From sequence record MF360958.1: a DNA stretch of 64,000 bases; one strand, 5' to 3'. The notes beneath the pieces were generated by a model. It saw nothing but the letters and a program-made list of their open reading frames with translations. It was not told where the DNA came from and made no database searches. Numbering within the stretch: the first letter of the stretch is position 1; the number at the start of each line of letters is the position of its first letter. Shown here one piece after another: positions 48,535-62,012 of the stretch. The translations under genes and the position numbers were made by a program.

Positions 48535-48669
48535 ATGAATAGCAATACTATGAACAACAATGTAAACACTTCAATCAACGAAATGAATATTTCTGTTGAT
48601 CACAATATTGCTATGCATAATGATCATATTAATAATGATATTGATATGTCATGGAGGGTTTTGATCTGA
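48535..48669 (+). CDS. attenuator leader peptide 1 (44 aa; 12 Asn, 6 Ile, 5 Met, 4 Asp, 3 His)
   Basis: MNSNTMNNNVNTSINEMNISVDHNIAMHNDHINNDIDMSWRVLI*, with an AAGGA RBS. Confidence 0.8.
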   Translation: MNSNTMNNNVNTSINEMNISVDHNIAMHNDHINNDIDMSWRVLI

Positions 48670-48729
48670 ATTTTTGGTAAATGCAACCAAGAGTCAATAT
48701 CAAAACCCTTCCAAACGGAAGGGTTTTTT
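48653..48729 (+). promoter_or_regulatory. attenuator 1: antiterminator/terminator switch
   Basis: GGAGGGTTTTGAT (48653-65) pairs with ATCAAAACCCTTC (48699-711), 13 bp, competing with terminator AAAACCCTTCC-AAAC-GGAAGGGTTTTTT (48702-29). Confidence 0.85.
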
Positions 48730-48753
48730 AGTTTATAGAGATTAAAAATTATA

Positions 48754-48831
48754 GGAACTGTAACTCAACTGGTAGAGTACCGGCCTGTCTAGTCGGAAGT
48801 TTTGGGGGTTCGAATCCCCTCAGTTCCGCCA
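48754..48831 (+). tRNA. tRNA-Asp(GUC)
   Basis: GGAACTG/CAGTTCC acceptor, loop CTGTCTA, G73, CCA. Confidence 0.9.
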
Positions 48832-48842
48832 AACAATACAAT

Positions 48843-48918
48843 GGTACTCATAGCTTAGTGACTAAAGCACTCGGTTGTGACCCGAGTAGACGTAGGTTTG
48901 AATCCTACTGAGTACCCC
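48843..48918 (+). tRNA. tRNA-His(GUG)
   Basis: G-1:C73, GTACTCA/TGAGTAC, loop TTGTGAC; CCA incomplete (CCT). Confidence 0.85.
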
Positions 48919-48936
48919 TCTAAATACTTAAAATGT

Positions 48937-49013
48937 GGCAAGGTAGTTCAGTTGGCAAGAACGCATCACTCATAATGATGAGGTCGGGAGTTCAAATCTC
49001 CCCCTTGCCACCA
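48937..49013 (+). tRNA. tRNA-Met/Ile2(CAU)
   Basis: GGCAAGG/CCTTGCC, loop CTCATAA, ACCA. Confidence 0.9.
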
Positions 49014-49063
49014 ACAAACAAAAAAGATATAATATAGTCAATACAAATTGAGGTTGATTAAGT

Positions 49064-49504
49064 ATGAACGATTGGGTGACACATCAAACACATGATGAAC
49101 CAAAAGATCTAGCACCGGATCAAATTATTGAAACAACATGGCCTAAGAATTTTAAGCCAGAATTAAAAGGTGATAATAAAACACAATATATTTCAGTATT
49201 CCGTTTAATTTGGCTTCCGGGTATTGAATATCGTGTTGTAAAAGATAAAGACGGTATTGGTTATTGTAACCATGAAGGTCTTAAACAATCAACACAGTAT
49301 GTTGCAACACAACAATGTGTTATTGGTGGAGAGCGAGCTTTGCAATTTAGTTCAAAGCCCGAATATGTAAAACCGTCATTGATTGCTCCCTATAAATGGG
49401 ACAATGGAGAAAATAACGGGCGCGTTGATGCGCCTCAAAATAAAATCAAACCCGGAGATTGTAAAGATTCAATTCTCCGAGTTTGGTGGAGCGAAGAAGT
49501 TTAA
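49064..49504 (+). CDS. hypothetical protein
   Basis: 146-aa ORF with GAGG RBS inside the tRNA operon. Confidence 0.6.
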   Translation: MNDWVTHQTHDEPKDLAPDQIIETTWPKNFKPELKGDNKTQYISVFRLIWLPGIEYRVVKDKDGIGYCNHEGLKQSTQYVATQQCVIGGERALQFSSKPEYVKPSLIAPYKWDNGENNGRVDAPQNKIKPGDCKDSILRVWWSEEV

Positions 49505-49507
49505 TAC

Positions 49508-49584
49508 AGAAAGGTAGCTTAGTTGGTTAGAGCGCACCCCTGATAAGGGTGAGGTCGGCGGTTCGAATCCGCCCCTTTCTACCA
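49508..49584 (+). tRNA. tRNA-Ile(GAU)
   Basis: AGAAAGG/CCTTTCT, loop CTGATAA, ACCA. Confidence 0.95.
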
Positions 49585-49607
49585 AATTAAAAATTATAGG
49601 AAAAATT

Positions 49608-49781
49608 ATGGTTTACAATAGAGAACAAGCTTACGAAGAACTTTATGATCCAGATAGTGAACAACGTTCTGATATGGCTCATGAGCTTATTGAGCACATG
49701 GAATCCATCAAGCGAGCATATAGAAGTGGTGATATGGATGAGCTTGAAGACCTCATTGAAGAATGGGGTGGAAATTCTTAA
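49608..49781 (+). CDS. small hypothetical protein (57 aa, not in the ORF track)
   Basis: MVYNREQAYEELYDPDSEQRSDMAHELIEH...WGGNS*, with AGGA RBS. Confidence 0.55.
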   Translation: MVYNREQAYEELYDPDSEQRSDMAHELIEHMESIKRAYRSGDMDELEDLIEEWGGNS

Positions 49782-50005
49782 CGGTTAAACTTATGAAAAT
49801 TAAACATATATGCATTTTTCATAAATGGAAAACATATACAGATCATTTACCAATTGTTTATAAACAATGTAAAAAATGTAATAGGATAAAAATAGTTTCT
49901 ATTACTCCTATGGGACATCGACCATACGATTTAAAAGTACATATAGGAAAATGATCGTTAACTGTTGACAAAGGATAAATAAAACGTTAAGATAATATAA
50001 ACAGT

Positions 50006-50081
50006 TGCAGGGTAGAGCAGTTGGTAGCTCATCGGGTTCATAACCCGAAGGTCGGCGGTTCGAGTCCGCCCCCTGCCTCCA
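50006..50081 (+). tRNA. initiator tRNA-fMet(CAU)
   Basis: 1:72 mismatch, three G-C pairs in the anticodon stem (TCGGG/CCCGA), loop TTCATAA, CCA. Confidence 0.9.
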
Positions 50082-60671: not shown

Positions 60672-60740
60672 CAATTGAGCATTTTTTCAGTAACATTATA
60701 AATAACATAAACAAAGCAATTAAACATTAAGGTAATTATT

Positions 60741-60854
60741 ATGAACGCTCTAACACGTACATTCACATTAACAATCACAACACGCTCGTCAGAGCGCACG
60801 AGTGAAGTACGCTCCACTGAACGCGAAACAGTAGGAGAACGGAAGGGTGTTTGA
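60741..60854 (+). CDS. attenuator leader peptide 3 (37 aa; 9 Thr, 6 Arg-CGN, 5 Glu, 4 Ser); not in the ORF track
   Basis: MNALTRTFTLTITTRSSERTSEVRSTERETVGERKGV*; AAGG RBS; promoter TTGACA-N17-TAACAT (60668-96) followed by TATAAATA. Confidence 0.85.
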   Translation: MNALTRTFTLTITTRSSERTSEVRSTERETVGERKGV

Positions 60855-60912
60855 ATAATTCAAATATAAGAATGTTCAACAATAAAAACCCTTCCAAATG
60901 GAAGGGTTTTTT
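60841..60912 (+). promoter_or_regulatory. attenuator 3: antiterminator/terminator switch
   Basis: GGAAGGGTGTTT (60841-52) pairs with AAAAACCCTTCC (60884-95), competing with AAAACCCTTCC-AAAT-GGAAGGGTTTTTT. Confidence 0.85.
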
Positions 60913-60935
60913 AGTTTGTGGTTTTAGAAAATTTA

Positions 60936-61026
60936 GGAGAGTTGGCAGAGCGGACGATTGCAGCGGTCTTGAAAACCGCCGAGGGTTTGCAGCCCTCCGT
61001 GGGTTCGAATCCCACACTCTCCGCCA
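60936..61026 (+). tRNA. tRNA-Ser(UGA)
   Basis: GGAGAGT/ACTCTCC, loop CTTGAAA, long variable arm, GCCA. Confidence 0.95.
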
Positions 61027-61033
61027 GAACATT

Positions 61034-61108
61034 GTCCTGTTCGTCTAATGGTTAGGACTCTACCCTTTCACGGTAGCAACAGGGGTTCGAATCCCCTACG
61101 GGACGCCA
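61034..61108 (+). tRNA. tRNA-Glu(UUC)
   Basis: GTCCTGT/ACGGGAC, loop CTTTCAC, GCCA. Confidence 0.95.
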
Positions 61109-61115
61109 ATACAAT

Positions 61116-61187
61116 GCCTCGGTAGTTTAATCGGTAAAACAAATGACTTGTAATCATTAGTCGGTGGATCGTAACCGCCCCGAGGCT
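61116..61187 (+). tRNA. tRNA-Thr(UGU), no encoded CCA
   Basis: GCCTCGG/CCGAGGC, loop CTTGTAA, variant T-loop ATCGTAA. Confidence 0.8.
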
Positions 61188-61219
61188 AGAATATTATAAT
61201 CATAAATACCTTAAAATTA

Positions 61220-61921
61220 ATGAGGTATTTTATGATTAAAAATTATACAAAAAAAGAATTAGAATCAATATTATTAAAATATGGCATGGATAATAATACT
61301 TTTATTGTGAAAAGGGAATTTCCTAATCATATAGATTATATACCATCATATAATTCATGTTGGAGAAATGGAGTAGAAATTAGAAAAGTTAATAAAATTA
61401 TAGATTATAAATTTTACAAAACAAGTCCAAATAAATGTACTAATTGTAGAAAAAATTTAATTTATAAGAAAAGATATAATAAATTTTGTAATAGGTATTG
61501 TTGGATTATATATAATGCTAGATATAATTGTGGTAAAAATTGTTTAAATTGTTCTAAAAGATTTACATCGAAAAGTTCTAATTCAAAATATTGTTCTATT
61601 GAATGTTCAGCAGAGAAAAGATATAAAGATACTATTAATAAATGGTTAAATGGTGAATTAAAGGGGCATACTGGTAAAGCTCTGCAAATTAAACAATTTG
61701 TGAGAAAATATTTATATCAAATAAGAGGAACAAAATGTAGTGAATGTGGATGGGATGAAAAGCATCCAAGAGATAATAGACCTTTAACACAATTTCATCA
61801 TATTGATGGGGATGCATCTAATACAACACCATCAAATCTTAAAATATTATGTCCTAATTGTCATTCAAAAACTGATAGTTATCTTTCAAGAAATAAAAAC
61901 AGTTGTCGTGATAGAAAATAG
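61220..61921 (+). CDS. HNH homing endonuclease (likely start 61232)
   Basis: CxxC repeats (CTNC, FCNRYC, CLNC, YCSIEC) and RGTKCSECG...QFHHIDGD..N....NLKILCPNCHSKT; late CATAAATA upstream. Confidence 0.9.
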   Translation: MRYFMIKNYTKKELESILLKYGMDNNTFIVKREFPNHIDYIPSYNSCWRNGVEIRKVNKIIDYKFYKTSPNKCTNCRKNLIYKKRYNKFCNRYCWIIYNARYNCGKNCLNCSKRFTSKSSNSKYCSIECSAEKRYKDTINKWLNGELKGHTGKALQIKQFVRKYLYQIRGTKCSECGWDEKHPRDNRPLTQFHHIDGDASNTTPSNLKILCPNCHSKTDSYLSRNKNSCRDRK

Positions 61922-61923
61922 TT

Positions 61924-61957
61924 TTAGTCGGCGGATCGAAACCGCCCCGAGGCTCCA
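61924..61957 (+). repeat. duplicated 3' half of tRNA-Thr, with CCA
   Basis: TTAGTCGGCGGATCGAAACCGCCCCGAGGCTCCA versus 61157-87 TTAGTCGGTGGATCGTAACCGCCCCGAGGCT (31 bp, 2 mismatches). Confidence 0.9.
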
Positions 61958-61963
61958 AATAAT

Positions 61964-62012
61964 TCCCCGGTAGCTCAATTGAATAGAGCAACGGTCTACG
62001 AAATCGTAGGTT
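61964..62012 (+). pseudogene. 3'-truncated tRNA-Arg(ACG)
   Basis: TCCCCGG, D-arm, ACGGT-CTACGAA-ATCGT, AGGTT, then AT-rich sequence; no T-arm or acceptor 3' strand seen. Confidence 0.75.

Follow-up and report, generated by a model that had tools for sequence, protein, structure and literature searches.

Leader-peptide regulation is known from the attenuators of enterobacterial amino-acid operons (trp, his, leu, thr, ilvGMEDA, ilvBN and pheA), in which a promoter is followed by a codon-rich short leader, a masking stop codon and mutually exclusive terminator and antiterminator structures. The same components are found upstream of tRNA genes in a 64,000-nt stretch (the window) of the 440-kb genome of Salicola phage SCTP-2 (MF360958.1), and we hold it probable, at roughly 0.7, that they form ribosome-mediated (leader-peptide) transcription attenuators ahead of phage tRNA operons. 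The SCTP-2 units differ from the amino-acid operon attenuators in that their targets are tRNAs rather than biosynthetic enzymes, with a product that would act directly on the tRNA availability being sensed, and in that each leader would sense four to six or more amino acids, matching the tRNA set that it precedes; leaders responding to several amino acids do exist in thr and ilv.

Leader-peptide attenuation of a gene of the translation apparatus is known from pheST, encoding phenylalanyl-tRNA synthetase, in which the pheM leader senses one amino acid on a bacterial chromosome. T-box riboswitches resemble the SCTP-2 units in sensing tRNA status and in choosing between a terminator and an antiterminator ahead of translation-related genes. 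A T-box, however, binds one uncharged tRNA via a specifier codon and the T-box sequence without any translation, whereas the SCTP-2 signal lies in frame over 12-29 codons of an open reading frame (ORF), and the T-box model of Rfam gave no match at E<=0.1 in positions 46000-64000 of the window or 15000-36001 of a further stretch of the same genome (L001, see below). Phage tRNA clusters of the T4/T5 type are, like those of SCTP-2, interleaved with small ORFs and homing-endonuclease genes; those of T5 differ in being annotated with ordinary promoters. Phage tRNA genes are usually viewed as a fixed supplement to codon usage or as decoys against tRNA-targeting defences and, to our knowledge, the setting of their expression has hardly been addressed. 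A first-pass annotation of the window knew of no leader-peptide attenuation of tRNA genes, and full-text literature searches likewise returned no report of it, coverage of subscription journals being thin enough that an older report is possible. Two candidates for a precedent were rejected: the T5 record annotates no attenuator-like small ORFs in its tRNA region and a scan found no matching ORF there, and the promoter of pheV in E. coli K-12 lies directly upstream of the gene with no leader, contrary to the suggestion of an attenuator before pheU/pheV.

Promoters, leaders and hairpins upstream of the tRNA clusters

SCTP-2, with whose record the window agrees at 100% identity, is a jumbo myovirus from an Italian saltern whose host is a salt-loving bacterium; the region has a G+C content of about 30-35% and we take the host to be G+C-rich. 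The phage belongs to a clade of jumbo phages that includes XacN1, Atu_ph07 and Rak2-like phages (PMC5852040; PMC6102473). Window coordinates are record coordinates minus 248000, and the analysis was extended to 294-380 kb of the record (stretches L001 and L002). In the stretches viewed the GenBank record carries CDS features only, with no tRNA annotated; tRNA genes were called with ARAGORN, including its intron-aware mode, and Rfam. The units are named U1, U2 and U3 (in the window), U4 (elsewhere in SCTP-2) and M1 (a metagenomic homologue); within each, A is the 5' strand of the antiterminator, and B and C are the 5' and 3' arms of the terminator.

The first-pass annotation had described, three times over, a promoter followed by a short leader, a complementary strand, a near-identical terminator and a tRNA cluster, and this description was confirmed and, overall, strengthened. 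In U1-U3 a promoter-like site leads to an ORF of 37-44 codons, then to a near-identical G+C-rich hairpin with a T-run, and then to the first tRNA. The exact motif AAACCCTTCC-loop-GGAAGGGTTT is present in three copies in the 64 kb, at 48703-48726, 55863-55887 and 60886-60909, all on the + strand and each directly followed by TTTTTTAGTTT, where none is expected (100 shuffles). The unit terminators have G+C-rich stems of 10-12 bp, loops of 4-5 nt and then six T's, and 26-36 nt separate the hairpin from the first tRNA in U1-U3. The features are as follows.

Unit U1
48481..48509, + strand: promoter-like site TTGCAT-17 nt-TACGGT, read from the sequence; a weak match that is not in the promoter-scan list
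48484-48491, + strand: CATAAATA motif overlapping the promoter-like site
48523-48527, + strand: Shine-Dalgarno (SD) sequence AAGGA
48535..48669, + strand: leader ORF of 44 aa, MNSNTMNNNVNTSINEMNISVDHNIAMHNDHINNDIDMSWRVLI (GenBank hypothetical gene 335)
48653..48665, + strand: segment A, GGAGGGTTTTGAT, predicted to form a 13-bp helix with 48700-48712; stop codon at 48667-48669
48702..48732, + strand: predicted intrinsic terminator, AAAACCCTTCC (B), loop AAAC, GGAAGGGTTTTTT (C)
48754..49013, + strand: proximal tRNAs Asp(GTC), His(GTG) and Met(CAT) (ARAGORN, Rfam)
49508-49584, + strand: distal tRNA-Ile(GAT)
50006-50081, + strand: distal tRNA-Met(CAT)
50517-50588, + strand: odd tRNA-like gene (Rfam tRNA, 40 bits; 'Tyr(ATA)' in ARAGORN) with C at position 33
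50729-50850, + strand: tRNA-Asn(GTT) with a 45-nt insertion in the anticodon loop, detected only by intron-aware ARAGORN and Rfam

Unit U2
55634-55641, + strand: TATAAATA motif upstream of the leader
55659..55686, + strand: promoter-like site TTGACA-16 nt-TAGAAT (11/12 matches)
55694..55825, + strand: leader ORF of 43 aa, MINASTTNIAKSMIGKAAKVSFKGGFVWAFSFKKASGQRGFLE (GenBank hypothetical gene 351)
55809..55823, + strand: segment A, GAGGGTTTTTGGAAT, abutting the stop codon at 55823-55825 and predicted to form a 15-bp helix with 55856-55870
55863..55893, + strand: predicted intrinsic terminator, AAACCCTTCC, loop AAGTC, GGAAGGGTTTTTT
55923-56340, + strand: tRNAs Lys(TTT), Phe(GAA) and Trp(CCA) (ARAGORN, Rfam)
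58137-58212, + strand: tRNA-Val(TAC)
58559-58650, + strand: tRNA-Ser(GCT)
59267-59342, + strand: tRNA-Gly(TCC)

Unit U3
60668..60696, + strand: promoter-like site TTGACA-17 nt-TAACAT
60697-60704, + strand: TATAAATA motif right after the promoter-like site
60729-60733, + strand: SD sequence AAGGT
60741..60854, + strand: leader ORF of 37 aa, MNALTRTFTLTITTRSSERTSEVRSTERETVGERKGV (GenBank hypothetical gene 364)
60841..60848, + strand: segment A, GGAAGGGT, predicted to form an 8-bp helix with 60888-60895; stop codon at 60852-60854
60884..60915, + strand: predicted intrinsic terminator, AAAAACCCTTCC, loop AAAT, GGAAGGGTTTTTT
60936..61187, + strand: tRNAs Ser(TGA), Glu(TTC) and Thr(TGT) (ARAGORN, Rfam)
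61964..62012, + strand: 5' two-thirds of tRNA-Arg(ACG), with acceptor, D arm and anticodon arm and without the T arm and 3' acceptor strand

In U1, U3, U4 and M1 the sequence AAGGA or AAGGT stands 7-8 nt before the ATG of the leader. None of the sites listed by the promoter scan falls in the gap between terminator and first tRNA and, as the gap of 26-36 nt is too short to hold a promoter, transcription of the first tRNA must cross the hairpin. The TATAAATA motif, found in U2, U3 and U4 (with CATAAATA in its place in U1), was considered as a late promoter of the T4 type and dropped, since the window holds 22 copies where 23 are expected.

Codon content of the leaders

Each leader is made up to an unusual degree of codons read by the tRNAs of its own cluster, as the first-pass annotation had claimed. 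Taking the phage's own long ORFs as background and applying standard wobble rules, 29 of the 43 codons of the U1 leader are read by its cluster (Asp, His, Met, Ile, Asn) against a background of 0.276 (binomial p=6.5e-8). For U2 the count is 20/42 (Lys, Phe, Trp, Val, Ser(GCT), Gly(TCC); background 0.207, p=8.6e-5) and for U3 it is 20/36 (Ser(TGA), Glu, Thr, Arg(ACG); 0.143, p=9.4e-9). With U4 included (12/27 against 0.142, p=1.4e-4), the share of own-cluster codons is 44-67% against a background of 14-28%, with a Fisher-combined p of about 2e-19. The +1 and +2 frames give 4-14 matches (6/42 and 5/42 in U1, 14/41 and 11/41 in U2, 6/35 and 9/35 in U3), near or below background in U1 and U3, somewhat above it in U2 and U4 and always well under frame 0, which ties the signal to the reading frame. 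The signal is also specific to the cluster: in a four-by-four matrix of leaders against clusters the diagonal values are 0.44-0.67 and the off-diagonal values 0.00-0.17. In every leader, codons for the proximal tRNAs and codons for the distal ones are separately enriched (p<=0.015 in 8/8 tests), so that each leader mirrors the whole of its cluster up to the next unit. Taken alone, the distal codons of U1 (Ile, Asn) account for 18/43 against 0.15 (p=2e-5), the distal set of U2 for 8/42 against 0.06 (p=0.0035), and the CGT/CGC codons of U3, which correspond to the truncated tRNA-Arg(ACG), for 5/36 against 0.02 (p=0.001). The match claimed for U1 holds given the tRNA-Asn(GTT) at 50729-50850, whose discriminator base G73 fits Asn and not His and which accounts for the 12 Asn codons of that leader. 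The tRNA-like gene at 50517-50588, by comparison, has a non-canonical anticodon loop and may not be a decoding tRNA; the U1 leader has no Tyr codons.

Below the level of the amino acid, the claim of a codon-by-codon match survived in part. Ser is encoded by AGY in 5/5 cases in the U2 leader (p=0.005) and Thr by ACR in 8/9 cases in the U3 leader (p=0.03), and Leu is encoded by CTN in 4/4 cases in U4 as a trend only (p=0.06). Arg is encoded by CGN in 5/6 cases in U3 (p=0.22), and the argument that CGN is remarkable in an AT-rich genome was rejected because CGN is the majority class, making up 59% of the Arg codons of the phage.

The fourth unit, U4, lies outside the window at 316197-316345 of the record and was found on extending the analysis, so that the three units of the first-pass annotation become four in SCTP-2. 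Its hairpin is AGCCCTTCC-AATT-GGAAGGGCTTTTTT (L001, 22319-22347) and its leader is a 28-codon ORF, MRTNTTVNQYQLQQLPLVLYPYNGGKGC, with a core, QYQLQQLPLVLYPY, made up almost wholly of Gln, Tyr, Leu and Pro. Downstream follow, in order, tRNA-Leu(TAG), Pro(TGG), Leu(GAG), Tyr(GTA), an insertion-bearing tRNA-like gene and Gln(TTG), and a separate terminator closes the operon. Since U4 had not been seen when the codon match was proposed, it constitutes an out-of-sample test, which the hypothesis passed. The promoter and 5' untranslated region (5'UTR) of U4 are 93% identical to those of U3 over 96 nt, whereas the two leader bodies bear no relation to each other and each suits the cluster that it precedes. 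The co-variation of leader and tRNA content that the first-pass annotation had looked to is thus seen between these two units, and again in the analogues from phages XacN1 and Xoo-sp13 described below.

A blind scan scored all ATG-initiated ORFs that have 15-75 codons and a 3' end no more than 250 nt upstream of a tRNA. Over 82 kb, with at least 14 candidates of 15 codons or more, the four leaders took ranks 1-4, with p between 9e-6 and 4e-4, ahead of a fifth ORF at p=0.08; when ORFs of eight codons or more were admitted (35 candidates) the four leaders again came top. Among 135 equivalent ORFs in unrelated loci the lowest p was 0.0066. The T5 tRNA region (19 ORFs; best p=0.0066) held no small ORF upstream of tRNAs that mirrors the tRNA set, and no comparable leader emerged from Atu_ph07 (scanned over 290-335 kb) or Serratia phage BF.

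These data bear on an alternative in which the hairpins are ordinary terminators of the preceding operons, placed after unrelated small genes, and the codon match is a coincidence or a product of compositional bias. The leaders are indeed annotated as plain hypothetical proteins, and the unit terminators are the strongest terminator-like sites on the + strand between 48 and 64 kb of the window and therefore probably also end upstream transcripts. That reading is nevertheless effectively refuted by the statistics: the in-frame match is cluster-specific with clean frame controls, the prediction held in the previously unseen U4, and the null sets hold no similar signal. In addition, only read-through would make sense of a promoter placed some 230 nt ahead of a terminator, and the A:B pairing described below reaches beyond the shared repeat.

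Competing folds and a proposed mechanism

The last three to five codons of each leader contain a near-copy of the 3' arm of the terminator (GGAGGGTTTT in U1, GAGGGTTTTT in U2, GGAAGGGT in U3), and segment A is complementary to B in all four SCTP-2 units and in M1. The outer A:B helices are predicted to be of 13, 15, 8, 9 and 9 bp in U1, U2, U3, U4 and M1 respectively. In the same order, the predicted energies are -26.7, -25.4, -17.2, -27.8 and -24.7 kcal/mol for the A..B fold and -15.7, -14.7, -16.6, -19.0 and -12.8 kcal/mol for the terminator, so that the antiterminator, in which a small spacer hairpin is nested within A:B in every unit, is at least as stable as the terminator in 5/5 units and is predicted to exclude it. 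Over the whole leader it is the minimum free energy (MFE) fold in three of the five (U1, U2 and M1); segment A of U3 and of U4 can also pair with upstream ORF sequence, a possible region 1, which in the MFE fold of U3 involves codons 1-4. The extensions of A:B past the shared core differ between units yet stay complementary (TTTTGAT/ATCAAAA in U1, TTTTTGGAAT/ATTCCAGAAA in U2, GGGCT/AGCCC in U4 and GGGTG/CACCC in M1). The terminator of M1 contains no equivalent of the last G-C pair of its A:B helix, which argues that A is selected for pairing with B and is not a mere copy of C.

The spacing of these elements is constant. In 5/5 units either 0-4 nt separate the end of segment A from the stop codon or the two overlap, and a ribosome at the stop codon would, in this model, mask A in all five. 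The T-run ends 58-65 nt after the stop codon in 5/5 units; the corresponding distance in trp is roughly similar. Unlike the amino-acid operon attenuators, U1, U2 and M1 have no clear region 1, and an untranslated leader would therefore be expected to read through rather than to super-attenuate. The only cis-regulatory matches of Rfam over the units are to leader-peptide families and are sub-threshold: Phe_leader (RF01859) on U1 at 31.8 bits and Thr_leader (RF00506) on U4 at 33.4 bits, each far below a gathering threshold of 55. The units appear to work like his/thr-type attenuators and yet stand outside the curated Rfam leader families.

The anatomy of the units, the codon statistics and the presence of the competing predicted folds are direct observations. 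Together, the in-frame match, the finding of U4, the competing folds and the lack of a listed promoter in the gap argue for the attenuator interpretation put forward in the first-pass annotation, and each of its predictions that sequence could put to the test was borne out. Under this interpretation transcription would start about 40-55 nt upstream of the short ORF, whose central codons are mostly those of the downstream tRNAs. When these codons are decoded quickly, the ribosome would arrive at the stop codon before RNA polymerase has moved past the 58-65 nt that follow it; its footprint would cover A, the B:C hairpin and U-run would form, and transcription would stop 26-36 nt before the first tRNA. 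When the matching tRNAs are scarce, uncharged or damaged, any slow codon would delay the ribosome, leaving A free to pair with B as it emerges, with the spacer hairpin nested between them; no terminator would then form and polymerase would read through into the tRNA genes. In U1 and U2, read-through would also be expected if the leader were untranslated. As the regulated tRNAs decode the very codons that are sensed, the loop would be a direct one: more of the same tRNAs would relieve the stall, and the capacity to decode each operon's own codons would be held under negative feedback. Such feedback would suit a phage of about 30% G+C if its host is, as we assume, G+C-rich.

Relatives, neighbouring genes and significance

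Patterns for the terminator and antiterminator were run over public viral, metagenome and genome contigs. Among the matches listed one was a true homologue, M1, on IMGVR_UViG_3300033146_004404 (201 kb, 33% G+C); the rest proved to be ordinary terminators or terminators preceded by a tRNA T-arm. In M1 the end of the 5'UTR and the core of the hairpin are the same, the spacer is similar and the leader is of 29 codons, ending in GGAAGGGTG; the unit lies upstream of a region with 15 tRNA genes, including an amber-suppressor-like tRNA(CTA). Immediately upstream of it is a 430-aa ORF (L242, 10001-11290) that resembles, by eye from its motifs, the RNA ligase RtcB.

This neighbour, a putative tRNA-repair enzyme directly preceding M1, is one of the reasons to consider a narrower version of the attenuator proposal, in which the architecture is the same and its main task is an inducible counter-defence: the leaders would sense when anticodon nucleases (PrrC-, PARIS-, VapC- or colicin-like) deplete or cleave host tRNAs, and replacement tRNAs would be made. 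Any fall in the capacity to decode the listed codons would be expected to trigger the sensor, and there is precedent for a phage tRNA neutralising a tRNA-cleaving defence in the tRNA-Lys of T5, which acts against PARIS (PMC11464382). However, the surroundings of the SCTP-2 units offer no defence or nuclease context, the Pfam matches being to HNH endonucleases only; the leaders cover at least 20 different tRNAs whereas known nucleases target few; and the RtcB label comes from motifs read by eye and not from a profile match. Plain homeostasis fits the same facts for an AT-rich phage in a presumably G+C-rich host, and on balance we regard counter-defence as the main function as rather unlikely.

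A blind scan of phage XacN1 brought up two unannotated ORFs. The first, MNKPYYKRYYAKA (L324, 30428-30565), precedes tRNA-Lys(CTT), Lys(TTT) and Tyr(GTA) and matches them in 7/12 codons against 0.07 (p=6e-6). The second, MNAIHIDNRADRFISIIADDSVSARVDSFSVVAVDSSNKQE (L324, 46104-46229), has 41 codons, with tRNA-Asn on one side and tRNA-Phe on the other; the 37 residues that follow its Met are drawn from just nine amino acids, exactly the set carried by the flanking tRNAs (Asn, then Phe, Asp, Ile, Ala, Val, His, Ser and Arg). It scores 37/40 against 0.52 (p=4e-8) at the amino-acid level and 28/40 against 0.32 at the codon level, with 9/39 and 11/39 in the other frames; its Arg codons do not match tRNA-Arg(TCT). 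The mini-leader rich in Lys and Tyr is conserved in phage Xoo-sp13 (MNKLYYKRYYKKLP; L328, 5414-5500) before tRNA-Lys, tRNA-Lys and tRNA-Tyr (p=8e-6). The hairpin that follows it is also kept, with one compensatory pair change relative to XacN1. The Tyr/Lys codons of this mini-ORF can pair with a downstream segment. Two further candidates were set aside: an Arg-rich ORF of 74 aa in Xoo-sp13, which proved to be an alternative frame of an annotated CDS, and a 56-codon ORF rich in Thr, Cys and Leu in Enterobacter phage vB_ExiM_F1M1E (L350, 2802-2972; 266 nt upstream of tRNA-Thr, tRNA-Cys and tRNA-Leu), which was judged unreliable in spite of its low p because it overlaps an annotated CDS in another frame and its background was drawn from 8.5 kb only.

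The conserved hairpins of the two Xanthomonas phages have no U-tract, and the output step in these units may therefore differ; the hairpin of the Lys/Tyr mini-leader suggests that what is controlled there may be tRNA folding or processing, and not termination. It might be proposed from this that leader translation governs the processing, folding or stability of the tRNA precursor (for instance by exposing or masking RNase P or RNase E sites, or the 5' acceptor strand of the first tRNA), and not termination. In Xoo-sp13 the 3' arm of the hairpin is apparently the 5' acceptor strand of tRNA-Lys(CTT), and the compensatory change agrees with such a role. The SCTP-2 hairpins, by contrast, are textbook intrinsic terminators (10-12 bp, G+C-rich, six U's) and A:B competes specifically with the terminator hairpin, which makes this explanation very unlikely for SCTP-2.

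A number of observations weigh against attenuation in SCTP-2 and should be set beside the evidence for it. We infer leader translation, termination at the hairpins and the tie between read-through and ribosome position from sequence. Some of the regulatory codons are so near A that a ribosome stalled on them would still cover it. Strong promoter-like sites lie within the clusters at 49005 and 49965 (U1) and 56714 (U2; perfect sigma-70-like) and could transcribe distal tRNAs while bypassing the attenuator. The suggestion that the tRNAs are driven wholly by internal promoters, which the first-pass annotation had named as a potential refutation, fails for the first tRNAs, with none of the listed sites in the short gap; the distal tRNAs may gain a constitutive component from these three. 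In U2 there is no SD before the ATG at 55694, the sequence seen in U3 and U4 having changed from AAGGT to AGAAT, and the best promoter match ends 7 nt before that ATG, which would give a near-leaderless mRNA; translation may proceed from such a leaderless mRNA or else follow from an upstream TATAAATA-type promoter at 55634-55641. The U2 leader also has six Ala codons (14% against a background of 2.9%) that its cluster does not explain. No tRNA-Ala was found in the 132 kb scanned (248-380 kb of the record), itself a limited part of the 440-kb genome, and a weak tRNA-like sequence at 59176-59256 (Rfam, 26.4 bits) has no G3:U70 pair, unlike tRNA-Ala, and no assignable anticodon. The assignment of tRNA-Asn in U1 hinges on removal of the 45-nt insertion, and the support from synonymous codon choice is modest. 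In U3 the tRNA-Arg(ACG), which the first-pass annotation took for an intact gene, is truncated: only the 5' two-thirds is present at 61964-62012, cut by an endonuclease-like ORF, and a search for the 3' half did not find it. Among the relatives, the M1 leader matches its tRNAs weakly (15/28 against 0.33, p of about 0.02-0.04), and with a frameshifted HNH gene and a tRNA fragment after its hairpin the M1 copy may in part be decaying; the Xoo-sp13 homologue (Xoosp13_102) of the second XacN1 ORF (leader X2) is poorly matched (p=0.07), and the lack of U-tract terminators in the XacN1 and Xoo-sp13 units counts here too.

The truncated tRNA-Arg(ACG) is probably a pseudogene left by insertion of the endonuclease gene, and the six Arg codons still present in the U3 leader suggest that the loss is recent. 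Mobile endonuclease genes and tRNA fragments fall at 59398-59958, 61220-61921, 61927-61957 and 61964-63004 of the window, the last of these including the tRNA-Arg(ACG) remnant. Two HNH endonuclease genes (Pfam) lie amid the tRNAs, and the ORF at 62042-63004, which truncates tRNA-Arg(ACG), is GIY-YIG-like by eye with no Pfam match. A duplicated 3' fragment of tRNA-Thr follows the second HNH gene, and endonuclease traffic appears to be remodelling the tRNA clusters. ORFs are interspersed among the distal tRNAs of U1 (49508..50850) and the tRNAs of U2 (55923..59342). Short insertions (45 to about 75 nt), within the anticodon loop or close to it, are seen at 50729-50850 of the window and at 23319-23473 and 26119-26249 of L001, and no anticodon could be assigned to the two tRNA-like genes in L001; insertions of this kind are far shorter than expected for a group I intron. 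Similar long tRNA-like genes are seen in XacN1, for example at 30282-30390 of L324. Between the U1 tRNAs and U2, at 50872-53765, are six tandem paralogous ORFs of about 150-170 aa with shared motifs such as YW.D and H(D/G).NRLK(L/I); the two that were scanned gave no Pfam family above cutoff.

If the attenuator reading is correct, SCTP-2 would provide the first case found of leader-peptide attenuation acting on tRNA genes, in a very direct loop in which the product relieves the stall that induces it, and the virus would monitor its decoding capacity codon by codon during infection. The four 'hypothetical proteins' of the GenBank record and the unannotated XacN1 ORFs are probably regulatory leaders. 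The whole device is a re-tunable part of about 200 nt, as U3 and U4 illustrate with the same chassis and different leaders, and might serve as a sensor of tRNA availability. It also offers a concrete hypothesis for how a phage could respond to depletion or cleavage of tRNAs. More tentatively, and with considerable doubt, leaders that mirror the downstream tRNA set may be an unrecognised, recurrent class of phage regulator in several jumbo-phage lineages, giving closed-loop, codon-resolved feedback through differing outputs and possibly an inducible counter-defence. Within such a class SCTP-2 and its metagenomic relative might act through termination, and XacN1 and Xoo-sp13 through occlusion or processing of the first tRNA.

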